This document shows positions 2,768 through 51,130 of a DNA stretch of 64,000 bases, one piece after another; the first letter of the stretch is position 1, and the number at the start of each line of letters is the position of its first letter. The position numbers were made by a program, and so were the translations under genes. The DNA lies in the NCBI GenBank assembly GCA_020891255.1, contig BQFW01000013.1, positions 2,596,026-2,660,025 of the forward strand, read 5' to 3'. This DNA is from Entomortierella parvispora E1425. Taxonomy: Eukaryota > Fungi > Mortierellomycota. Under the pieces are notes generated by a model, which saw nothing but the letters and a program-made list of their open reading frames with translations, made no database searches and was not told where the DNA came from.

Positions 2768-4086
2768 ATGGTCAACCATCACAACCACGGCCACCAGCCC
2801 AATGAGACTGATGCTCTTCTTGAGCGCGCCGAAGCCGGCGTTACCCGAGTTCGTTATGAAGCTCGCAGCAAGTGGTCTGGTATCCGCCACAAGGTACTTT
2901 TACTTGGAGTTTTCCCGCCGCTTCAAAGTCGCTTGACCATCACTGCTCCTTACAAGAGACGACGAACAGGAGTGCAACTGATGTGATATTTTGTTGCAAT
3001 GACAAGTCGACTTGAGGACTGACGCTTCATCTCCCGTGTTTATTTGTTTCACCAGTCCAGAAAGGCCTTTGCCGAGTTCCTCGGTACCGCCATCCTGGTT
3101 GCTTTCGGTTCCGGAGCCATTGCCCAGCTTGTCTTCTCGCCCAACAACTCTTGGTTCACCATGTCTCTCGGCTGGGGTCTTGGTTTGACCTTTGGTATCT
3201 ATGTCTCTGGAGGAATCTCTGTAAGTTCAAGTTGGCCAAAAATAACCCCCTCGTTTTCTGTGACTTTTGGTGTTCCTGAGCTATTGCGCCAAAGGACGGT
3301 GCAATGACCTCTTGTCTGTTTGAACTGTATCTGTTTCTGGACAATACGACAAGAAAACCAAGAAACTCGAAAAGTGGCACAATGGATCCCTTCAACCATA
3401 AACGCCCTCATTGTCTTTTCTTCAAACCACATTTCGCGCTTCCCACGCAAATCCGCCACCCCCGCCGCTGAACAACCCGACTGATTTTTTTTTTCTGTCT
3501 CGGTTGCAAAATAATGTAGGGTGGTCATTTGAACCCTGCCGTGACTCTTGCCATGGCTATCTTCCGCGGCTTTGCCTGGGCTGATGTTCTCGTTTACTGG
3601 ATTGCCCAGTTCGCCGGTGCCTTTGCCGGTGCCTTGATCGTCTATATCACCAACTACTCTGCTATCCAGGCTGCCAAGCCCGAGGCCACCGTCGGCATCT
3701 TTGTCACCGGTCTCCAGACCAAGGATGTCACCACCACCGCTGCTTTCATTGCCGAGTTCCTCGGAACCGCTCTTCTTGTTCTCGTCATTCTCTCGACCTC
3801 GGACAAGGGCAACACCCCCGCTGGCAACACCCAGCCCCTCATCATTGGACTCTCGCTCGCCGCCATCGGTACCTCGTTCGGTTATGAGACTGGCTTTGCC
3901 CTCAACCCCGCTCGTGACTTGGCCCCTCGTCTGTTCACCGCTGTTTTCGGCTGGGGCTTTGAGGTCTTCACCCGCCAGGGATGGTACTTCTGGGTCCCAA
4001 TCGTTGCCCCCTTCTTGGGTGCTATCGGTGGTGCCTTCACCTACGATGCTTTGGTCTATGCTGGCCCCAGCCCTCTTAACAACTAA
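2768..4086 (+). CDS. Aquaglyceroporin (MIP family), 285 aa
   Basis: Exons 2768-2893, 3056-3220, 3520-4086. AEFLGT in TM1, GGHLNPA, and second box NPARD typical of aquaglyceroporins. Confidence 0.93.
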
Positions 4087-4529
4087 ACTGGTTATCAATT
4101 GACCCTTTCGTACATAGTAAAATAAACATTTTTTTTCTTTGCCTACTGAGAAGGGTGGTTTATTGTCATTTATTATTTTCGTTCCGTTGAGACAGATGGA
4201 GAGCTCTTCGAAAACTTTCCAGGATGATAGTCTGCTAGAGCATCGTTTCAGCACCATGAAAACCACTCCATGCCAAAGTTTGTTTGCGCGCCACAAAAAG
4301 AAAGAAAAAAAAGGGAGACGCGAATTGTTCGCGTTTTTTGCACCACCGTTCAGGATCATGCGAATCACCGTTATATCAGTCCGTTCAGCCGTCAATCATA
4401 AAAACAACAGCTAATATCAACCAGCGTTTGATGACGGTGCACCACCGATGCCTTAGCCAAAGATCATCATAAATGGAGGGTCATCATTTTCATAGTGAAA
4501 ACCATTTCTAGGTCCCTGAACAACTCTGC

Positions 4530-4537
4530 TATAAAAA
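4530..4537 (+). promoter_or_regulatory. Candidate TATA box
   Basis: TATAAAAA about 120 bp upstream of the ATG at 4651. Confidence 0.35.
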
Positions 4538-4650: not shown

Positions 4651-5100
4651 ATGGCTCCCCGCAAGGTTATCCTCTTGTTGACGGTCACTCTCCTGGCCAC
4701 CGCTCTTTTCAATGTCTCGTATGCAGCTCCGGTCTCTTCTGAGGTCACGTCCCTATCCAAGCGTGGAGACGATTGCGACGACGACTGCGATGACGACTGT
4801 GACGACGATAGCGACGACGATGATGACTGTGATGATGATTGTGATGATTGTGACGACAACCACCACCACAAAGGCAACGGCGTTCGCATTGTTCGTGTCC
4901 CAAAACCTTTCCCTGTGCCCTCTCCTTTCCCAGTCCCAGCTCCTGTGCCCGTTCCAGCTCCAATCCCAGTTCCAGCTCCAGGTCCTATTCCTGGCGGCTT
5001 TGCAGGCCCTGTAGGTGCGTTTGGCGGCGCGCCCTTTGGTGGACCCCTTGGCGGACCCCTCGGCGGACCCATTGGACCCGGTGGACCCGGCCCTTTCTAG
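4651..5100 (+). CDS. Secreted 149-aa protein: signal peptide, KR site, (CDDD)-type Asp/Cys repeat, HHH, Pro-Val and Gly-Pro-rich tail
   Basis: Intronless ORF from MAPRKVILLL; hydrophobic leader; SKR/GDDCDDDCDDDCDDDSDDDDDCDDDCDDCDDNHHH. Confidence 0.75.
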   Translation: MAPRKVILLLTVTLLATALFNVSYAAPVSSEVTSLSKRGDDCDDDCDDDCDDDSDDDDDCDDDCDDCDDNHHHKGNGVRIVRVPKPFPVPSPFPVPAPVPVPAPIPVPAPGPIPGGFAGPVGAFGGAPFGGPLGGPLGGPIGPGGPGPF

Positions 5101-5403
5101 AGGCGCAGCCAGTTTTTTTAGATCGACTGACCACTTTCCCGATCCGACATTAATCCACGCTACCTTGACTTTTCAGTCTGCAGTTCTACGCTTAGTGCCT
5201 ACATGAAGACGTAATAAAGAAGAAAACAGAAGCAAAGAGAAGTGGGCGCAGCTCCGCTGGGGCACAGAGGATGAGTCGCGATGGATGCATATGAATAGCA
5301 GTCACGTTCTAAGCCACACTCCCGGACCACAATTGAACAAAAAGAGGCACGAACCTTGGTCTCTTGCGGCCTTAGTTCATTATTCATTCCCACCACTCTC
5401 ATC

Positions 5404-8400
5404 ATGGCTACCGTCGTCATTGCCCAGAAGGCTGCCGCGATCCCCTATGGTACTTGCTGACATGATGGCTTGCCTGCTCGATTGATTGCGTACTTACTGG
5501 CAGGAAAACAGACGTGAAATCTGACTTGGGACTGGACTCTGGATCTACTTATCGATGCATGCAGGGATCTGGACAATGCCCACAACGATTCAATCAGTCT
5601 CTTTCGAGACCATCACCGGGAAACATGGAGCGATCCTGAATCTAACAGAGGCGTATTCTTTCTTCCCGCGTCGTCTTCACTAGCGCCCATTGCGCTTGTT
5701 GCTGCTTTGAACAACCCCGCTGTTGCCAAGGTCGAATACAAGAACGTTGCTTCTTTGGCTGAGCACGGTAACGCCACCGTTGCCTTGGTTGCCAATGGGT
5801 AGGTAGCTTTGTTGCCCTTCTCTCTGCTCATCTGACGCTTTTTTTTCAAGTCATCGCGCCTATCCAAAAATCTTGTCATTCTAACATTATGTGCTTTCCA
5901 CATCTACAGAACTACCTTGACTTCCGTCAGCGCCATCTTGCGTTACATTGTCCGCTCGCACAAGAACACTCTCTACGGCGCCAGCGCTGCCTCCACCAGC
6001 TTGGTACTTTCTTGATCCATCAGACATCGCTGTCGTTCACTTCAATTCCCTTGATCGCGCTTTTCTAATTGATCCAGTTTATGCCCGTTGTAGATTGACG
6101 AGTTCATCGACAGAAGCCAGGATATCATCAACTCTACCGACTTCAAGTCCTTGGACGTCATTCTTCAGCAGCTCAACCACCACTTGACCCTTCGCAGCTT
6201 CTTTGTCGGCTACAAGGTCTCCGTGGCTGATATCGCCCTCTGGGGAGCCCTCAAGGCCAACGCCATTTTCTCTCGTCAGCTCAAGACTGGCAAGGATCTT
6301 GGAGTTTATCTCGGACGTTGGTTCAACCACATCTCTGCCCAGGCCTTCGTTGCTGTTGGTCTTGCTGAGTTGGCTAAGGCTGCTGAGAGCACCAAGACTG
6401 TAAGTCCATGGCACCATAACTGATTTGGGCAGGATATCAGGATAATCAAGGGCGACACATTCTTAACATTTAAGTACCAATACTTAACATTTAAGTATCG
6501 CATACTTAACATTCTTAACATTTAAGTATCGCATACTTAACATTCTTAACATTTAAGTATCGAATACTTAACATTCTTAACATTTAAGTATCGAATACTT
6601 AACATTCTTAACGTTTAAGTATCATATACTTAACACACTTACTCTATTGCAATGATAGGCTAAGACTGCTGATCAGGGTTCGTTCGATATCAACTTGGTG
6701 GACGCCGAGATGGGCAAGGTCGTTACTCGTTTCCCCCCAGAGCCCTCTGGTTACCTTCACATTGGACACGCCAAGGCTGCCCTCTTGAACAAATACTTTG
6801 CTGATCAGTACAAGGGACGCTTGATTGTCCGCTTCGACGACACCAACCCCTCCAAGGAGAAGGAGGAGTACGAGCACTCTATCAAGGAGGATCTTCTCTT
6901 GATCGGCATCGACACTTCCGTTGTCTCGTATACCTCTGACTACTTTGATCAGATCTACCAGTATGCTCTTACCCTCATCAAGGAGGGCAAGGCCTACTGT
7001 GATACCACTGGACAGGAGCAGATGCGCGCTGAGCGTATGGACGGAATTGCTTCTCAGTGCCGTGATCTCTCTGTTGAGGAGAACTTGCGTCGCTTCGAGG
7101 AGATGAAGAACGCCACCGAGTTTGGCTTGACCTGCTGTCTCCGTGCCAAGATCTCTGTTGACAACCTCAACAAGGCTCTTCGCGACCCTGTCATCTACCG
7201 CTGCAACCTCCTCCCCCACGCCCGTACTGGGTAAGATTTCCAGCCTGCAGTTTTTTCTTGCCGCTTGATTTGTTTCGCTCTTTCTAACCTTGCATCTTCT
7301 TGCACATTCTAGTAACAAGTGGAAGATGTACCCTCTCTACGATCTTGCTTGCCCTGTTGTCGACTCTCTCGAGGGTGTTACTCACGCTCTCCGCACAGAC
7401 GAGTACCATGATCGCAACCCTCAATACCAGTGGTTCCTTGACAACCTCGGTCTTCGCCAGGTCCACATTTGGGAATACAGCCGTCTCAGCTTCGTCTACA
7501 CCTTGATGTCCAAGCGTAAGCTTACCTGGTTTGTTGACCAGGGACGCGTCTCTGGATGGGATGATCCTCGCTTCCCCACCATCCGCGGTATTCTCCGCCG
7601 TGGTCTCACCATGGAGGCCCTCAAGACCTACATTCTCATGCAGGGTGCTTCCACCAACTATATCACCTTGGAGTGGGACAAGCTCTGGGCTGTCAACCGT
7701 AAGCAGATTGACCCCATTGCTCCCCGTCATACCGCCGTCGAGGGCTTGAACAAGGTCAAGGTCACTGTTTCCGGAGCTGATGCCTATAACCTCAAGGAGG
7801 TCCCCCGTCACAAGAAGAACGAGGCTTTGGGCAACAAGAGGACCGCCTATGGCCCCACTCTCTGGATGGACCAGGCTGATTGCAAGGAGCTCGAGGTGAA
7901 CGAGGAGGTCACCTTCATGGACTGGGGTAACGCTTTCATCCGCAAGATCGAGAAGAACGCCGAGGGCATTGTCACCGGTGTTGAGGCTGAGCTTCACTTG
8001 GAGGGTGACTTCAAGAAGACCAAGAAGAAGTTGACCTGGTTGGCCGATGGCCCCGAGCTGGTCCAGGTCGACCTCATGGATTACGATTACCTGATCACCA
8101 AGAAAAAGATTGAGGAGGAGGATGAGCTCAAGGATCTCTTGACCCCTGTCAGTGAGTTCAAGACCCAGGCCGTCGCTGATGGTAATGTTGCCGAGTTGAA
8201 CAAGGGCGATATCATCCAGTTCGAGCGCAAGGGTTACTACATTGTCGATGCCGTCGCCACTGGCAGCGCCCCTGCCCGTTTGATCTTGATCCCTGACGGC
8301 AAGGTCGCCTCCATTGCCTCCAAGGCTGCCCCTGTCACCATGACCGAGCAGAAGGATGCCAAGGATGCCAAGAAGAAGAAGGAGAAGGGTGCCCCTGCCG

Positions 8401-39995: not shown

Positions 39996-41449
39996 CTCTC
40001 TATGGGCGAGGCTTACACCCTCTGCTTATGGTGGCGTTGCAATTGATGCTGTTGTCGTCTTCAGGGATGGCATTGGCTATGGTGATCAGAAGTCTTCGCT
40101 CAGCTGCGGTTGTTTTCACGACTGGGTGATTGGGACCACCGTGCTGTGCGGGTTAATAGCATCAATGGGGCTGTACGGTTATGTTTGGCTATTCCGTTCA
40201 CTAACCATTACTCTTTTTTAGGTAGGAATTTCGGCGTTGGGTCTCTTGATGGAGATGGCTGCTCTATTTCACTTGGGTTTGGCGCTCAGGATTATCGGAA
40301 GCACTCCATTGGACTTGTTGACGTGCTGTTTGTTGCAACGGTATCCCTCGACCTCTGAAGAAACGGTGAGCTAGTCGCTTGTAGTGGATGGTGAGTAGAG
40401 TCGACCGCCTGTGCAGTTGTGTCGTAGTGGATTTACATCTCTTGTATTCTTACATGTAACGAAAGGAATAAAGTCCTAGCTGCCACTGTACCTTGCGATC
40501 CCTTCTTGTACAGTGCACATCGTCGGTCTCGTAGAATCCTTGCATTTAGCCCCATGTCCCATTGGTAGTTACTCTTTAGCAGAGACGCCGAACACTCCTT
40601 CCTCTTTCCATTGTGCAGATCGATTACAGGTTGAATTGATTGCTCATAGCGCGTTTATTATTGAAGGCAGACGATAGTTCTCTCCACCTCTTTCACTTCT
40701 CTCTCCACCTTCTCTTCCCTCTCTATCCCCTCCTCTCTCCCTTCCATTTCATGGTAGTATTAATGGTATCTTATTATTTATTATAACCACGGAGTATAAT
40801 ATATACCATACCTTCACGCCTCTCAAGATTGTTACAGAGATCCCTATAGGAGTGTTGCAGTATCCTAGCTGTGCGAATTGTCTCTTGTTCCTGCCAAAAA
40901 TCATCTTTTTTTCGGTAGACCTTCCATTGTTTTTGGAGTTGAAGGCCTGTCTGATGAGCACAAAGTGCTCGCTGGCGATCATTCGGGGATGACTATATAG
41001 GCCTGCAGATGATGAAACTCTTGCTTCTTTCCAACCCCACGAAAGAACTCTCGCATCGAAATCTGCACGTGCCGTGGAGGTAAAGTATTGCACCTGCGCG
41101 AACCTCTCACATAAAACGAGTCGCTGAGCCAGGTTGATGGGTGACAAAACAAGATCTTGCCAGAACCTCATCTGCCTCGACGGGAATCATGCCAATCCCA
41201 ACGCACTGAAGTAATGGGCTGGTTTGAAAGCAAGCACAACAAAAACAAACAATTTGTGGGTGCCAAAATAACAATCAGAATCAGACCATCATCGACGCGG
41301 CACAGTCTACAAGCAAGTGAGCGGGTGAAAGAGACAAAGCGAGACAGAGAGCGACGGACTGGGAGAGTGAGAGTGAGAGAAAGCGAAGAGACAGAGAGAG
41401 TCAAGAGCAGAGAGAGAGTGTGTGAGAGAGACAGGGTGAGAGTGACTGA

Positions 41450-41780
41450 GGCAGAGATTGAGTGAGTGCCTTTTGGAGAATAATGCGTCCCTGAACTCGC
41501 CGTCTGTCTCCCTCCTTTCTCTCTTCCTTGACATCTCTCAACACTCAACTCATTTCTTGCATCTAACTTGCCTCGTCTATTGCATCCCTCTCGTCTCTTG
41601 CACGCTTGCATCCAACTCACCAACTCATCTCTTGTGTCCCTCGACTCTCTCGCCGTTCTTGTATCCTGCATTCCACAACTGTTGTATCCTTCCCTTCCCT
41701 CTCTTGTCTCCTGCATCTCTCTCGTCTCTTGGATTCCTCTTCTTTTTTGCATCTCTCTCTCTCGTCTCTTGCGTTGCTGT
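41450..41780. repeat. Pyrimidine-rich 'tcttgcatc' subtelomeric satellite
   Basis: Same motif family as 48820-49430 and 61990-62480. Confidence 0.7.
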
Positions 41781-41802
41781 TGGAAAAAATACATGTATTT
41801 AC

Positions 41803-43245
41803 TTAACGCTGACTTCTCATTGCCAGAAATGTGGCCATTCCAGAGAACACTAGTAAAAGACTACAGGCGCTCGAGTACTGCGCTAAATTTGAGTTAGGAA
41901 AGTAACCCTGCATATCGCCCATAGACATGGTCATATTGACCGGATTTGGAGGAGTACTGCTGGCAAGGTCGCTGGACTGCATATCTTGAAAGCCCATGGC
42001 ACAGGTCACTAAGCCCACTGCATAGACAGACTTGCCCAGGAAGCCATGGAATTGTCTAAATACACGCTTGTGCTCTGCGGTCTGTTTCTTGCGGGCGATG
42101 TGAACGTGGAACCCTGCCAAGATTTGGAGGGTCCAGAGGAGTAAAAAGACTATCCCGGTCCATGAATGGGCGCTGTAGAGCGTAAAGAATGGAAAAACGA
42201 CTGGTTGAGGCGAGAGTTTCTTGTAGTAGACAATGGCGCAGAGTCCTCCGACGGCACAGATAAGTCCCAAAAGATGGCAAGCGACGTGGTAATATCTATC
42301 ACCAAAAAAAAAATAACATTAAATATTTGCGAAGGAATGTTTACATTGTCCAAAAATACGCGTGATGATCGATCGTACTTGATGAGGGTGCGATTCTTGG
42401 TTAAGAAACCGATCAGCGGCGAGGAATAGGCTAGGAGGGCCTCCTGTGTAAAAACCACAATGAAGAGAGACATGAGGAGAGCGTGCCAACCAAACAGGTT
42501 CGCCTCCTGGAAGCCAATACCGCCCTCGGCCTGATAGATCCATAAGAAGAGGATGATCAAGAAGATGACGGCGATAAAACGTGGCAGTATCGATCGAGTA
42601 AACGCATAGGGGGTTCTTGAGGGTTTCGGTTCCACTTCGGCGTCGATTTGACTGATTTTGCCGCCATCATAGTCAGTGTGTCCTTGTTTGCCAAAGCACA
42701 GGAATCCAATGAACGATCCTCCGACAGCAGAGAGCAGCAGGGATGCGTTGAAAGTCATGACGATCAGCATGAGGACCCAGCCAAGGAGGAGCTCGAATGC
42801 TCCCAGAGCTGCCAAAGGCAGTCGTTCCTTGTAAATTTGAAAGCGCGAAAGACTAACGCCTTGCTGGGCGCATTCATTGGTATGCTTTTTGTAATTTTCT
42901 AATGTGTATAATATATCTCACTATTAGTTAGTTGGATCCATAGAGTTTGTTTCGAGAAAAAGAAAAGGTTTTCAAGAGCAGTATTTCACCTTGCAAGCTG
43001 AAAACATAGTTCGAGACAGCAACACGTAGAGTAGCGAGCGCAACGGTAAAGACGATGGTGCCGAAATATCCCGCTGCGCTGGAGATCATCCACGATCTGA
43101 AAAGAATGTTATCTCCTAGGCCAAAGTGCAAGAACTGGTTGCAAGCAGAGAAGGGCTTAGTTGTCATCCTACAAACAATTATACGATTGTGCAAAAGCAA
43201 GGCACCTACCATCGAGCCCATTGTTGTGGATCCATTCATGTCCAT
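41803..43245 (-). CDS. Ctr copper transporter-cytochrome b561 fusion protein, 397 aa
   Basis: Exons 43245-43210, 43134-42990, 42898-42379, 42295-41803 (1194 nt, in frame). Ctr part: MDMNGSTTMGSM|FLHFG..DNILF..W, LMLIVMTFN (MxxxM), GSFIG (GxxxG). b561 part: GWH, YYH, SAHSWTG and FHGFLG. Confidence 0.88.
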
Positions 43246-43603
43246 TTTGCTATTTCTTCTTAAGCAGAGGGAGGATTTCTGGAGCGGAAAGTGAAGTGAG
43301 GACAAGTGCGAACAACGCAGCAGGGAAAGGGATGAAGAGCGAGAAAAGAAAAGAAGGTGAGAAAAAGACAAAAGGGTGGGGGTGAGATGACAACCACGAT
43401 AAAGTTATGACAGGGCCAGGGAAAAAATGACAGGGTCGGGAATATTTGACAAGGTTGCCTGACATTCAACTTTTAGCAGATGGAGGACCTCAGCGGTTTT
43501 TTGACATACTTTAGCCGGCCGTTTTCTATTGGACAACTCCTTCTGCAGCACCGGAGTAATCCTCGGACAACATCCAAAATGGAAAGTGCGTGGCAGATGG
43601 AAC
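42802..43603. repeat. About 800-bp tract identical to 46033-46834
   Basis: Six-frame translations are identical at offset 3231; by eye, differences appear only outside the tract. Confidence 0.9.
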
Positions 43604-43874
43604 AAAGTAAGGCAAAACAAGAGAGCTGTCAGATTGGCAAAAAATATTTTGACAGACTCGATCCGACTCGGTCTGGGCACGCAAACGTCAAAATCAGGGC
43701 ACTCGCACAATCCAGACCGATGGACCTGGAAGGCAAAAAAGAAAAAAAAAACACAAGCACAACAGTCACGCACCTCTTTATTTCCTTGCAGAGCAGGAAA
43801 TAACGACAACAGCTCGCGCCATTGCTCATGCTTCTTGGTCCTCTCCTTCTTCCATTATTATCCCCTTACGACGC

Positions 43875-45730
43875 TTGCGTTGGTGTTTCTTCAAACCGTC
43901 TGCTTTGTTTCGTGGAACGCAAACCATGTCAAGTACTCCCCCTGTCTGCATGCACTCTGCCATTACAATTGGAACCTCAACGTTGCAATCAAGTTCAAGA
44001 AAATCAACGGACTTGCAAACTATGATACACACAGACCCTTCCTCTGGGGCGTCTCCATTCCCGACGTCAATCAGGATGCAATCAAAATGCTCAGTGTCCT
44101 TGAAGTGAAGACCGAGCTGAACAAGCAGGCGATTGTTTCCCAAGAACCTCGATGACAACACCGACTTCGTTGCCCAAGGATCACCATCAGGTAATGTCTG
44201 CGTTTTTCGTTAATGCTGCGAAAACTCCTGTACATGCGCTCATACAAACTACTCTTGCTTCTAGGCGTAATGGTTGTGTATCAGCATGCCAACGTAACCA
44301 TGGCAGCGGCGCTCAGTCCGATGTCCATAATCCAGTATCTGCTCATCCCTCTTCAAGGTCTCCCAGCTTCCCCCTCTCTATACTCAGATAAGCCTGGTGA
44401 GTCAGCTGCGCGTGTCCTGCTTAGGTGCACCTATTACCGTCTTGCTCATCTCTTTAGAATAGTCGCATTGACTACCATAGCAACAGGACTTATTGTATGC
44501 GGCAGGATCTCGTGGAACAGGATCTCTGGAGCAGGGAAGAGCGGACAGTAATGGCTCATTCGGCTTGCCAAAATCTGCACATTCTAGAACCCAACAAGTG
44601 GTGCAGATGACATCCTGACCAACTATTCGTGGGTCCATCAGCGTCCTGGGATGCAGCTGAAAACATGTGGCCTTTACGTCAAAGCGCATAAGAAGGATCC
44701 CGGATTGAACGACATGCTTGCGTTGTACGGGCGTTGTCAGATACCCCCCAAATCCATTCAAAGAACAACGAACAACAAATCATGGACCGCGTGCGAGATT
44801 TGACATTCGGTCTTCTGTATTTGCAGCTTTTGATTCTGGAGTACAGAGAGAGTATCCACCAGATTCGCCCTCGCCCTCCTGCAGAAGGTGGATACTTCTG
44901 CAAGGCAGCACCAGCCTTCTTGTATGTGCTTGGGGGCCTTTTCAAGGATGTCAGACTGGTGGCTCACGGCTTCCGACTGGTGGAACCTTAGTATCACCAA
45001 CCCTGTGCGTGGACTTGCATGAAAGAGGAACTGAGGCGACCTTTTGAACATGCACCACAGGCACGGCCAGGTTTTATTTTGATTCTGGATGATGTTCAAG
45101 TGCTGGGAATGCTCCCGATGGACCGCCTCTCAACATTGGACATACAACCATTCGGCCCGCACTGGTTCATCTCTACGAGTTCCAGTGAGGTTCAAAAATA
45201 CAGGACGAAGTCAGGATTCGCAACCATACGTTGAGATGCGGAGTTGAGTCCATTATTTGAAGACTTACTTTGGAACAACCATCCGACGAGTGGACGAAGC
45301 ACCTCAACGACTTAATGTATCGAATGACAACAGATTTATCTCAATCAGCACTATTGACAAGGAACTCATCCACGATAACCTATGTTCCAAACTCGTCGGC
45401 ACTCCTCCCAGTCGAGGACGTTTCGAAAATATTTGCCCCTCGATTTCAAAGTATCAAGGACAGATTAGCCATTATCATGGAGGGGGCTCTTGACGTACAA
45501 GGAAGGCTTCCTAGAGTTAGCGGGGGATGTGTTTAACCTGATTCGAGGATACTCAGGCTACTCAGCGACCTATGAGTGGTCATGTTCATGGAAGCAGAGA
45601 TATCATTAGATAGGGAAGCACAATACGGACCGCCTGGCACGAAGTCATGAGCTTGGGACAGTTTCTGGATATTCATTTCTGTCACGATCCAGGCACTGGT
45701 GCTCCAGACATCATGTTTGCATTGTTCAGC
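43875..45730 (+). pseudogene. Degraded Crinkler-like gene (Ubl N-terminus plus P-loop NTPase)
   Basis: RPFLWGVSIPD (CRN LxLWxVSIP-like), ISGAGKS (Walker A) and FILILDDVQ (Walker B-like) in broken frames. Confidence 0.6.
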
Positions 45731-45896
45731 CAGGCTATGAAGCAAACTTTACGTGCTGATTCAAGGAAGACATGCCGAAATGTTCAAGCGACAAAATAAA
45801 GAGCCATGGGCATCGACATCAATCATATTAGCGCATAATTGCTCTATCAGTCATATGGATTACATTGTGCTTCCCTTTTTTTTTTTTTTTATTATT

Positions 45897-46476
45897 TCAG
45901 TGAAAAAAACCTCGCCTTCGACCAAAGCACAGGACTCCAATGACCGATCCTCCGACAGCAGCGAGCAGCAGGGATGCGTTGAAAGTCATGACGATCAGCA
46001 TGAGGACCCAGCCAAGGAGGAGCTCGAATGCTTTCAGAGCTGCCAAAGGCAGTCGTTCCTTGTAAATTTGAAAGCGCGAAAGACTAACGCCTTGCTGGGC
46101 GCATTCATTGGTATGCTTTTTGTAATTTTCTAATGTGTATAATATATCTCACTATTAGTTAGTTGGATCCATAGAGTTTGTTTCGAGAAAAAGAAAAGGT
46201 TTTCAAGAGCAGTATTTCACCTTGCAAGCTGAAAACATAGTTCGAGACAGCAACACGTAGAGTAGCGAGCGCAACGGTAAAGACGATGGTGCCGAAATAT
46301 CCCGCTGCGCTGGAGATCATCCACGATCTGAAAAGAATGTTATCTCCTAGGCCAAAGTGCAAGAACTGGTTGCAAGCAGAGAAGGGCTTAGTTGTCATCC
46401 TACAAACAATTATACGATTGTGCAAAAGCAAGGCACCTACCATCGAGCCCATTGTTGTGGATCCATTCATGTCCAT
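45897..46476 (-). CDS. Stand-alone Ctr copper transporter, 137 aa, ending RRRGFFH
   Basis: Exons 46476-46441, 46365-46221, 46129-45897 (414 nt). MxxxM and GxxxG are intact; it has its own stop codon. Confidence 0.85.
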
Positions 46477-47399
46477 TTTGCTATTTCTTCTTAAGCAGAG
46501 GGAGGATTTCTGGAGCGGAAAGTGAAGTGAGGACAAGTGCGAACAACGCAGCAGGGAAAGGGATGAAGAGCGAGAAAAGAAAAGAAGGTGAGAAAAAGAC
46601 AAAAGGGTGGGGGTGAGATGACAACCACGATAAAGTTATGACAGGGCCAGGGAAAAAATGACAGGGTCGGGAATATTTGACAAGGTTGCCTGACATTCAA
46701 CTTTTAGCAGATGGAGGACCTCAGCGGTTTTTTGACATACTTTAGCCGGCCGTTTTCTATTGGACAACTCCTTCTGCAGCACCGGAGTAATCCTCGGACA
46801 ACATCCAAAATGGAAAGTGCGTGGCAGATGGAAAAAAATAAGGACTCTGCTGGGCCTTGAGAAACAAAAATAAATCAAAGAGAGCTGCCAGAGCTGTCAG
46901 CAGGTTTCCAAAAAATATTTTGACAGCAGACTAGGTCTGGGCACACAAACGTCAAAATCAGGGCTCTCGCACAATTCAGACTGAGCGCTGTGGCCAGAAC
47001 TTTTGCAAGGACCTGCACCGTGTTATTTTGTTGCCCGCAACTGATCGTTCCTGAACTGTGCCTCTCTTCTTGCCTCCCACCTCTGTCAATCCCTCTAAGG
47101 CTCAAAATCAGTCCCAACTGGCGATTCATTCTTCTGCTTTATCAGTCACTAGGATTGAGTTTTTGGTGTTGATTTACATTCCAATGGCAAGGTACGGTGT
47201 TTATTATTACCAAGTCGAGAAAGGCTCAAGTAGCACTGAATCAGTTAGGTCCTGGAACGTGAACGCGCTCCAGCTCTTCTGTCATCCGAGGGCGACGCAA
47301 TGCAGCTGATACAGTAATTCTCGCCTCATACGATTATATGTCAAGGTCTACGGCTGTTTATTTTGTCACTTGAACTCTTTAGCATGCCTTTCTTGAGTT

Positions 47400-48660
47400 A
47401 GCGCTGAACAATTCAAACATGATGTCTGGAGTACCAGTTCCTGGATCGCTCCCTACAATAAAAGTAATATTGGAGCGAGACTCGCCAACTTTAGGAAAGA
47501 GCGGTGGCACAATACCTCCATCGTTCCCAAAATCATGACAGAAATGAACATCCATAATCAGTCCCCCCCAAGCTCATGACTTCTAGTATGGGAGTCCGTG
47601 TCATGCTCCCATATCTAATGATGTCTGGTTTGCCTAGGGACATATCATGTAGATGCATCGCGCCGTTGAAAATGTCTTTTGAGACGACCTTGTCATGGAG
47701 TATCCCTTTCAAGTTTGCTGATATAAAGAAATCCCGATTCCACCTATGAGCAGCCTCCTGAGAACATGTTGCCTGCATGTAACGTTGGCGCCGAGCCAAA
47801 AGCATTCAGGAACCGTTCTCAAAAAAAAAAAAAAAAAAAGGTCTGCTTCCATGAACATGACCACCCATAGATCACTTACTGAGTTGCCTGAGTCCATGCA
47901 TCCTCAAATCAGGTCAAATGCAACCGCCACCCACGCCAGGAGAGCCCTTCCTTCTACGTCCAAAGCCCGCCTTGAATGATGGAAGCTAGTATGTCCTTGA
48001 TACGTTGGAATCGGTCGAGGGCGAGTTTGGCACAGAGGTCATCGTGGATGAGTTCCTTGTCAATAGTGCTGAATGAGATAAATCTGCTGTCATTCGATAC
48101 ATAAAAGTCGTTGAGGTGCCTCGTCCACTCGTCGGATCGTTGTTCCAAAGCAAGTCTTCAAATAATGGATGAGCAGAATTGGTGGCGCAAGTCGCAACAG
48201 AGCCTTTGACCTCATCCTGATGAAGAAGACTGGCGAGCCGAGCCCTTGCTCCAAAGCCCAGTGCTCGATCCTGATCTAACAGGTTTTGTTATTCGTGCAT
48301 CAGGAAAGTCAGCCAACCATTCTGGCAGTCTTTGCTGCATGAAGTTCATTTGCTGAAAAATTGGTACCTGATGAAGAGCCACTAGACCATTCCAGCTCGT
48401 GTCTCAAGGCATGGATGCGAATCTTGACCTCGTCCAACATGGTTGCAACTGGCTGGAATTCGTAGAGTTGAACCAGTATGGGCCGAATGGTTGTATGATC
48501 AATGTTGGGAGGTAGTCCATCGGGTACCTTCCCAGCACTTGAACATCATCCAAAATCCAAAATAAAGCTGACCATGCCAGAGGGGGAAAGAATGTCCGAA
48601 GGTGGAATGAAGGAATGAAGAGAAAGAGATTCACTGCTGTATTTGATTTTGCATTCGAAT
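47400..48660 (-). pseudogene. Inverted, diverged partial copy of the 45.0-45.7 kb CRN-NTPase pseudogene segment
   Basis: Reverse complement of 48000-48170 matches 45250-45400; WILDDVQVLGRYPMDYL parallels LILDDVQVLGMLPMDRL. Confidence 0.7.
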
Positions 48661-48819: not shown

Positions 48820-49745
48820 CCAACCCATCCATCTCGTCCCTTGAATCCATCTCGTCTCTTCCATCCTTCTCGTCTCTTGCATCCCTCTTATCTCTTGCAT
48901 CCCTCTCATCTCTTGCATTGATCTCGTCCCTTGAATCCAACTCGTTTCTAGCATCCATCTTCTCGTCTCTTGCATTTTTTTCTTGCGCGCTTGCGTCCAA
49001 CTCATCTCTTGCATTCCTTCTTGCGTCCCTAGACTCACTTGTCCAACTCGTCTCTTTCGTTTCTTGCATCCCTCTCTCGTCTCGTCTCTTTCATCTTGTG
49101 CATCCTTCGACTTTCTCATCTGCTGCATTCCACAACCCCTGCATCCCTCTGTTGTCTCGACTCTTGCTTTTTTCCACTCTCGTCTCTTGCATCCATTTTC
49201 TTTTTTGCATTTCTCTCGTCTCTTGCATTCCTCTTCTTTTCTTGCATCTTTTTCGTCTCTTTCTTTTATATAGACTCTATCTCTCTTCTTTCTTACATCT
49301 CTCTTTTCTGCATCTCACCCATCGCTTGCATCCCTCTTCTTGTATTTGTATCCTCTCTTGTATCTCTCTTCTTGTTCATCATTCTCCTTTCCTGAACCCA
49401 ACACTCTTCTTTTACCTCTTGCGACCACTGTTTCAACTGACCCAATGCATCCAATTCGTCTCTTGAAGCAAACATCAACAGGTCTTTGTTGAGCCCTGCC
49501 TTTGTTCTTGCTCTCTTCTTCTCTTCCTGTTGTCACAGGCGTGGGCATTGCTTCTCGCTTTCTTCTCCCTTTCCTTTCTCACGCGTTGCTCCCTTCTCTC
49601 TCCCTTTGTCATCAACCACAACTTCTTTTACATCTAATCATACGGAGAAAGCTCATTCAGTCTAGCCAAGGACCAGAGTGGATGTGGGACAAACAAGATG
49701 CATGGAGGAAACATTTCATAATTCCGGCGCGGGCACTTCTCGGAT
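48820..49745 (+). repeat. Subtelomeric satellite plus unique module, paralogous to 61990-62830
   Basis: Shared cccaatgcatccaa...gagaaagctcattca.tctagcca...gcacttctc. Confidence 0.8.
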
Positions 49746-51130
49746 AATTCATGTCACTTTTGCGAAAGGGTATCCTTATGGCATCCGAGACTCGACCACA
49801 GTTGGAAAAGTTCCGCGAAGCAAGTCCAGCCGCCATTCACCTGCGGGTCTCCTCAACAACTGCCTATTCCACCTCAGCGAAGGGACTGCATCTCCATGGA
49901 CTTTGCCGGTCCATTCCCCTGCACTGAACGTGGTGTGGATACGGTCACAGTTCTTGTTGACAAACTCTCCAAGCAAGCGATTTTCGTACCATCAAGATCG
50001 ACAGACACAGCCTCGGATGTGGCACACAATTTTTTCAACCACGTCTTCCATCAGCACGGCATGCCTACAACAGGTTTTTTACGACCGCGACGCCAAGTTC
50101 ACTTTCACTAGCCATTTTTGGACCGCTCTCCACTCCCTCGTGGACACCAAACTCGCCCTCTCCACAGCCTTCCACCCCCAGACCGACGGTCAATCTGAAC
50201 GCGCCATTCAGACTCTCAAAACGATACTGCGGAACTATGTCTACCACAGGATATCCACCTGGGACCTCCTCACGGGATCGGAATTCGCCGACAACAACGC
50301 TATCAATGCTTCCACCGGGTTCTCACCTTTCTTCCACAACAAAGGATTCCATCCACGACTTCCATCGTCATTACCACCAACAACTTCCGTACCATCGGTC
50401 AACCAATTTATTCAGGAGCAACGCGAGCGATAGCGATGCTCAAGTCATGGCTCAAGAGCACCTCCACGATGCCCAACTTCGTCACTCACACCAAGCCCAC
50501 AAACACCAACGCAACCACACTTTCAAGATTGGCGACCAGGGCCTTCTCTCTACAGACCACTCCACTGCCCTAGCGGATCAACATCGCCCATCACGAAAGC
50601 TCCAGGCTAAATTCATTGGTCCCTACACCATATTGGAACAACGCTCACCAGTCTCGTTTCGGTTGGAACTTCCGTCGTCCTTACGCATCCACGATGTCTT
50701 CCATATGGACCGATTACGCGCCTACTCGCCATCACAGGAACGTCTGGGGGAACGCACACCGGCTCGACCACCACCCGAAACCATTGACGGCGTCCAAGCA
50801 TGGGAAGTCGAAGAAATGAGGCTCATGGAAGTTTCTGATTCTCTGGAAAGGATACCCGAGGGAGGATGGCACTTGGCAATGCGTAGCGACCTCCAACACT
50901 GCCCAGACATCCTCAAGAACTATGGCGACCGGGTTGGCGGGATTTTTGTTAAAACGGAAAGGTGTAACAGGATTGGATCGATATCCAACCATAGATCAAA
51001 CTTGGATAGCAAACAACCATAGATCAACTTAGATGCAACAACCTTAGGTCGAACGTAGATAGCGACACATGTATATAAGCAGCATAGATAGAAACCTTCA
51101 ACAAGCAACTTCCGAGCTCTTACTGTAACA
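49745..51130 (+). mobile_element. Degenerate Ty3/Gypsy (chromovirus-type) 3' fragment: integrase, GPY/F, chromodomain remnant, PPT and candidate 3' LTR at 50963-51130
   Basis: ISMDF.GPFP, VDKLSK, STAFHPQTDGQSER, KFIGPYTI and IHDVFH in shifted frames. Purine tract aaaacggaaagg is followed by TGTAACAG...CTGTAACA. Confidence 0.88.

Follow-up and report, generated by a model that had tools for sequence, protein, structure and literature searches.

A Ctr copper channel subunit fused to a cytochrome b561 in Entomortierella parvispora: a candidate reduce-and-import protein encoded by a single gene

The minus strand of a 64,000-nucleotide stretch of the Entomortierella parvispora E1425 genome (contig BQFW01000013.1; hereafter the window) carries, from 43245 to 41803, a gene that encodes a Ctr copper transporter domain and a cytochrome b561 in one polypeptide. 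Our preferred reading, to which we give a probability of about 0.7, is that this single gene for a nine-helix protein joins an N-terminal Ctr Cu(I) channel subunit to a b561 cupric reductase, with reduction and import coupled. What we infer within this reading is that Cu(II) is the substrate, where the electrons come from, how copper is handed from domain to domain, how many chains assemble, and which membrane contains the protein; for the last of these we favour the cell surface.

The earlier note on this DNA had described four canonical exons forming one 397-aa frame, and this gene model was recovered when we rebuilt it from the sequence: splicing of the three introns (75, 91 and 83 nt; all GT..AG) gives a single frame of 1194 nt and 397 aa with no internal stops. 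Exon 1 (43210–43245; all features of the gene are on the minus strand) supplies the start codon and a short ectodomain rich in Met, MDMNGSTTMGSM, which has an NGS sequon; the ortholog P0148 has the same beginning. Exon 2 (42990–43134) encodes the FLHFG motif and Ctr TM1, and its end at 42990 coincides with a block end in L004, a spliced Podila contig described below. Exon 3 (42379–42898) covers the Ctr cytosolic loop, TM2, TM3, the linker and b561 TM1–TM2, and so holds the domain junction; it includes the MxxxM motif in Ctr TM2 (M104, 42770–42768; M108, 42758–42756) and H199 in b561 TM2 (42485–42483). Exon 4 (41803–42295) encodes b561 TM3–TM6, H237 (42288–42286), H277 (42168–42166), H317 (42048–42046), an invariant MQSSDL motif, the Met-rich sequence MTMSMGDM (41911–41934, accompanied by an NMT sequon) in the outer TM5–TM6 loop, and the stop codon.

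The Ctr domain occupies residues 1–130 of the 397-aa protein and the six-helix cytochrome b561 approximately residues 160–397. Between Ctr TM3 and b561 TM1 lies a polar linker (residues 131–160; 42600–42689), entirely inside exon 3, that contains no stop, Met or intron and varies in length among aligned relatives. Consistent with the claim that Ctr runs into b561 without a stop, intron or Met, a 221-aa ORF is continuous across the junction. Since the junction lies within exon 3, splice choice is unable to part Ctr from b561, and since the next in-frame Met after M108 is M203, a separate b561 has no start at the junction. The GenBank protein P0093 (E. parvispora, 370 aa), named automatically as “solute carrier family 31 (copper transporter), member 1”, matches residues 28–397 at 100% identity; its model begins at M28 and leaves out exon 1 and FLHFG. 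The 397-aa start is backed by the Podila verticillata ortholog P0148, which is also 397 aa long and aligns without gaps at 76.6% identity, and by an equivalent upstream ATG in the transcript contig L004.

We compared the individual exons with Pfam profiles at the curated cut-offs of 25.3 bits for Ctr (PF04145) and 23 bits for Cytochrom_B561 (PF03188). Exons 2 and 3 both exceeded the Ctr cut-off, at 26.4 and 39.1 bits, respectively, and exon 4 scored 60.1 bits with Cytochrom_B561. In the ortholog P0148, Ctr matched residues 12–129 (55.5 bits, profile positions 1–151) and b561 matched residues 198–337 (82.4 bits). All of the Ctr motifs quoted in the earlier note were located: MDMNGSTTMGSM-FLHFG, MLIVM (M104/M108) and GSFIG (G121/G125). 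The N-terminal ectodomain is very short, with 12 residues ahead of FLHFG, and has methionines at positions 1, 3, 9 and 12, one of them just ahead of TM1. Hydropathy peaks concur with the AF2 model in the placement of the three Ctr helices; TM2 carries MxxxM and TM3 carries GxxxG. We conclude that residues 1–130 are a Ctr/SLC31 Cu(I) channel subunit, which is predicted to contribute to a trimer pore and to take up copper.

The b561 half contains FGWH (H199), KYYH (H237), SAHSW (H277) and FHGFLG (H317). A phmmer search with this half matched Arabidopsis CYB561B (4o6y, E = 6.8e-10) and human Dcytb (5zle, E = 1.5e-8), and H199, H237, H277 and H317 align opposite conserved histidines of both structures, which, from the literature, we take to be heme ligands. 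A profile built from 13 fusions matched Ctr1 (6m97, E = 8.6e-16) as well as b561 (4o6y, E = 1.4e-18; 5zle, E = 7.7e-15); an ESM Atlas look-up of exon 3 gave weak b561 and Ctr leads at most. The AF2 model, with a mean pLDDT of 83, has nine helices in a three-plus-six arrangement, the same as that given by hydropathy, and a disordered, low-confidence linker (pLDDT <50; P0093 residues 107–121). Using Foldseek, the b561 part superimposed on 4O6Y and 5ZLE with TM scores of 0.86 and 0.84, rmsd of 2.7–2.9 Å and sequence identity of 18–21%. Ctr1 structures, which sequence profiles did recover, were absent from the Foldseek results for the whole model, probably owing to the small size of the three-helix domain. 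STEAP structures were weak Foldseek matches, with E above 0.2, and no exon had a Pfam match to FAD/NADPH-binding or ferric-reductase transmembrane families (NOX/FRE, STEAP). The half also includes EALLAYSSP and flanking Lys/Arg residues (KNRTLIKYYH, KRVFRQFH), which may be compared with the ALLVYR-like cytosolic ascorbate site. The domain scores, the superpositions and the aligned histidines bear out the proposal of a six-helix b561 with four histidines in order, and we conclude that the C-terminal half is a two-heme cytochrome b561, with heme binding predicted. The reductase of the fusion would act like the NOX/FRE or STEAP metalloreductases, by analogy, and belongs to neither family.

Ctr proteins have their N-terminus outside and their C-terminus inside the cell (PMC6437178). 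Given this topology, the b561 domain would begin in the cytosol, so that H199 and H277 would bind the outer heme, and H237 and H317 the cytosolic heme. The domain order and topology thus hold for the suggestion that a cytosolic Ctr C-terminus fits a cytosolic b561 N-terminus, and the sequons NGS, NAS and NMT are all on the predicted outer side. The outer- and cytosolic-heme histidines are arranged in the same way in canonical b561 proteins.

The b561 subfamily to which the fusion belongs bears several signs of a link to Ctr. Its outer TM5–TM6 loop consists of 16.4% Met (294 of 1795 residues), as compared to 2.9% in the remainder of the protein, and 49 of 79 such loops have at least three Met. 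MxM and MxxM, with which Ctr ectodomains handle Cu(I), are frequent in these loops. This Met-rich segment directly follows the invariant MQSSDL and adjoins the outer heme; the enrichment holds in stand-alone b561 proteins too, including those of chytrids, and the Met-rich loop is absent from three fusions (P0032, P0057 and P0063). In two proteins of one fusion clade, P0019 and P0130, b561 is followed by Cys-rich tails (CCEKCAC and CCDQCQCG); stand-alone Ctr proteins have similar Cys-rich copper-binding tails at their cytosolic ends.

Gene neighbourhoods point in the same direction. In the chytrid Podochytrium sp. JEL0797, a Ctr gene lies head-to-head with each of two subfamily b561 genes, and between these b561 genes are another two Ctr genes; Physocladia obscura has another divergent Ctr/b561 pair. 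At the Podochytrium locus (L001), these six genes, four for Ctr and two for b561, are packed into 5 kb. One of its Ctr genes, at 5155–5649 on the minus strand and head-to-head with a b561 gene, is uncalled (Pfam 82.6 bits); a 288-aa gene with no family match is called on the opposite strand, with its end at 5097, beside the uncalled Ctr. Four loci with stand-alone b561 genes, from metagenomes and other genomes (L006–L009; two of the four are near-copies encoding the same protein), had no Ctr within 5 kb, and hence the pairing is not universal. Across fusions and the neighbourhoods that we examined, the only recurrent partner of the subfamily was Ctr; no iron permease or oxidase recurred. The substrate of the b561 subfamily defined by MQSSDL and the Met-rich loop is probably copper.

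If our preferred reading is correct, electrons would enter b561 on the cytosolic side, from ascorbate or its fungal analogue erythroascorbate, and the two hemes would carry them across the membrane, where Cu(II) would be reduced at the outer (extracytosolic) face. Next to the outer heme, the Met-rich TM5–TM6 loop and the conserved MQSSD motif would then catch Cu(I), which would be passed to the Met-rich N-terminus of Ctr, to the MxxxM filter of the pore, and on into the cytosol. Ctr channels carry only Cu(I), and environmental copper is Cu(II). Counted against this reading are the symmetry mismatch between a Ctr trimer and a b561 dimer, the form in which b561 proteins have been crystallised, the b561 loci with no Ctr nearby, the three fusions that lack a Met-rich loop, the lack of a yeast-type CuRE in the promoter, and the action of b561 proteins on Fe(III) and monodehydroascorbate. 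Each activity has a precedent: the b561 protein Dcytb reduces both ferric and cupric ions, the latter in cells (PMC4425144), and Ctr1 is a Cu(I)-selective trimer in which the MX3M methionines form the filter (PMC6437178).

The same chemistry could instead take place in a vacuolar or endosomal membrane, with the protein reducing stored luminal Cu(II) and exporting Cu(I) to the cytosol, much like the yeast pair Fre6 and Ctr2. We consider this unlikely, although it has more in its favour than the other alternatives. The predicted topology is the same for a lumen and the cell exterior, and the location is favoured somewhat by the ectodomain, which is unlike the long Met-rich ones of high-affinity surface Ctr1, and by the fact that many b561 proteins, such as those of chromaffin granules, lysosomes and the plant tonoplast, work in organelle membranes. 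However, the outer Met-rich motifs and N-glycosylation sequons fit the cell surface equally.

It is far less probable that the b561 domain is a ferric reductase, an ascorbate recycler or a channel-gating redox sensor, and that the fusion serves regulation or co-localisation without any hand-off of copper. Characterised b561 proteins do reduce Fe(III) and monodehydroascorbate (PMC4425144), and sequence does not reveal the substrate. Against this, the Cu(I)-type MxM/MxxM motifs in the outer loop beside the outer heme are found subfamily-wide, and the recurrent partner is Ctr rather than an iron permease or oxidase.

Fusions of this kind extend well beyond the window. An exhaustive HMMER search with exon 3 yielded many proteins of 350–490 aa that match both halves. 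Both domains were present in 35 of 150 scanned sequences (149 that were fetched and the window’s own model), and two more were found later, for a total of about 37. The holders include Mortierellaceae, the chrysophyte Chromulina nebulosa (EukProt) and MMETSP transcripts with complete fusion ORFs; metagenomic contigs carry intronless single-ORF Ctr-b561 fusions. On the metagenomic contig of P0063 (ENA ERZ27310456), 4 kb include two divergent fusion genes (449 and 437 aa) and a 162-aa stand-alone Ctr. Thirteen fusions at 31–38% identity all have M104, M108, G121, G125, H199, H237 and H277, and 12 of them retain H317. Conservation of the motifs of both domains at this level of identity indicates that both halves are under selection.

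The Mortierellaceae fusions form one clade in a b561 tree, with 100% support, and across the tree as a whole the fusion state is scattered, with at least eight changes of state, at least four of which are forced by well-supported branches. We therefore set aside a single origin of the fusion. The number of fusion events is uncertain, because the tree is a quick one and because metagenomic proteins that appear to be stand-alone, on contigs of ~1 kb, may be truncated. Full-text searching, with subscription journals outside its coverage, found no description or test of a Ctr-b561 fusion. The earlier suggestion of novelty therefore stands insofar as no characterised example was found in the literature, but this genome is not alone in having the architecture, given the ~37 fusions in several lineages. 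The proteins are in public databases under automatic names with both Pfam domains, and hence the architecture is open to any reader of those databases.

The fusion gene shares most of its Ctr-coding part with a second copy ~3.2 kb upstream. Copy 1 of the duplicated block (42691–43612, minus strand) takes in exons 1 and 2, the two introns and the part of exon 3 that codes for Ctr as far as the end of TM3, together with promoter and 5′ UTR sequence of ~370 nt; it is identical to 45922–46843 at 915 of 922 positions (99.2%). The second copy belongs to a tandem paralog (45897–46476, minus strand; exons 46476–46441, 46365–46221 and 46129–45897) that encodes a stand-alone Ctr of 137 aa, ending seven residues past TM3 (..LCFGRRRGFFH*) and scoring 41.3 bits with Pfam Ctr over its exon 3. 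Five of the seven differences between the copies fall within 113 nt of the breakpoint, at the 3′ edge, and all five are nonsynonymous (G93K, S117A, F123V and F126V); ~800 nt of promoter, exons and introns are identical.

Several independent assemblies cover the domain junction. Contigs of the source run bridge both duplication breakpoints (41500–42761 and 45352–45992) with zero differences, and the shared duplicated part has ~2x depth in that run. In strain X3, a single contig of ~94% identity spans 41741–43612, i.e. the whole gene, and in each of strains X4 and X5 one contig extends over 41807–42840, which corresponds to b561, the linker and Ctr TM2–TM3; an additional non-source run, X6, gave two short fragments with no joints. 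The same two-domain protein is encoded in four other Mortierellaceae genomes (Entomortierella chlamydospora, Haplosporangium, Dissophora and Podila). A Logan contig from Podila sp., L004 (SRR6256867), includes both domains and runs from 5′ UTR to 3′ UTR. It matches the P. verticillata genomic locus L005 in a colinear way, apart from three segments, of 74, 80 and 119 nt, that it lacks, and these sit exactly at the three intron positions of the window gene. We conclude that L004 is a spliced mRNA that runs through both domains, and that one mRNA for Ctr and b561 is established in the congener Podila; a transcript ended or spliced between the domains, which the earlier note would have taken as contrary evidence, is not what the congener makes. 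That misassembly or a faulty gene model at the border of the near-identical duplication (breakpoint 42691) has joined separate Ctr and b561 genes is hardly credible: the duplicated block does stop exactly where the Ctr domain ends, and the second copy there is a stand-alone Ctr, but the junction lies in one exon with an open frame and no Met to begin a separate b561, contigs from four runs bridge it, orthologs in four other genomes have the same architecture, and a spliced transcript contig crosses it. The Ctr-b561 fusion is a genuine single gene, and the artefact reading is contradicted.

The tandem arrangement is shared with P. verticillata, where locus L005 has near-same boundaries (419–1329 and 3621–4534, at 96.5% identity) and an intact stand-alone ORF. 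Orthologs in Entomortierella and Podila have about 79–84% DNA identity. As the same tandem is found in Podila and the paralogs are closer to each other than orthologs are, the duplication is old and has been homogenised by gene conversion. In strain X3, position 46893 is joined to 43630, more likely due to loss of one repeat unit; the idea, drawn from X3, that copy 2 is a recent strain-specific duplicate was dropped, since Podila has the same tandem. The Mac1-type CuRE (TTTGCKCR), a yeast consensus, has no site in either promoter copy, and its count in the window is below chance.

The stand-alone paralog raises the possibility of a mixed assembly, in which two fused chains would form the b561 dimer and one stand-alone Ctr would complete the pore, giving a dedicated copper reduce-and-import machine. 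This proposal is speculative, and we think it improbable. It would explain why a truncated Ctr with the same promoter is kept beside the fusion in two genera, and why gene conversion keeps the two nearly identical; it would also explain the metagenomic contig with two fusions and one stand-alone Ctr.

The surroundings of the two genes are repetitive. Contig depth over 43600–45900 and 47000–48600 is 200–2000 in two strains, as compared to ~80–150 for single-copy sequence, and inverted repeats (45055–45730 and 47403–48583) bracket the stand-alone Ctr copy. The high-depth spacer and flank with these inverted repeats are probably transposon remnants. Putative integrase/RNase H-like ORFs are nearby, at 49678–51022. 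An imperfect repeat with an 18-nt period (units like TCTCGTCTCTTGCATCCC) occupies 41400–41780, just past the stop codon of the fusion, and 48832–49388, ~7 kb away; it yields long spurious ORFs on both strands.

Reductase-assisted copper uptake by Ctr is known; what is new is a b561-type reductase, its physical fusion to the channel, and the Met-loop signature of the subfamily. In yeast, Fre1/Fre2 work with Ctr1/Ctr3 at the surface and Fre6 with Ctr2 at the vacuole, in each case as two separate proteins. As proposed for the fusion, copper in the yeast systems is reduced from Cu(II) on the outer or luminal side, and Cu(I) passes through a Ctr trimer to the cytosol. However, the yeast FRE proteins are NADPH/FAD-dependent, NOX-type enzymes encoded by separate, unlinked genes, whereas in the fusion an ascorbate-type b561, without a nucleotide-binding domain, shares its polypeptide with the channel. 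Mammalian Dcytb (CYBRD1, 5ZLE) matches the fusion in its b561 fold and four histidines, and mammalian CTR1 (6M97/6M98) has the MX3M filter in common with the Ctr part (PMC6437178), but these are two separate proteins. Arabidopsis CYB561B (4O6Y) is the best solved match to the b561 half (TM 0.86; profile E = 1.4e-18), although it is stand-alone, without a Ctr. The alignment to it does not reach MQSSDL or the Met-rich loop. That to Dcytb likewise ends ahead of the loop, and it is for this reason that no Met-rich loop is aligned to Dcytb. CYB561B is a six-helix, two-heme transmembrane oxidoreductase that depends on ascorbate. DOMON-b561 proteins (CYBDOM) likewise combine a b561 electron-transfer core with a second domain at the outer face, but there b561 is joined to a soluble domain that binds heme or sugar, and not to a subunit of an ion channel.

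To our knowledge, the question of which reductase feeds Ctr, and with what physical coupling, is settled for the yeast FRE proteins only, and is debated in animals (Dcytb, STEAP). A natural fusion is evidence from genetics that a Ctr channel can have a b561-type enzyme as its dedicated copper reductase, and the chytrid head-to-head pairs and the Met-rich outer loop back the same conclusion. The fusion would also offer a compact, single-gene system for hand-off from reductase to channel, and it points to a route of copper acquisition, in early-diverging fungi and protists, that has had no characterised member.
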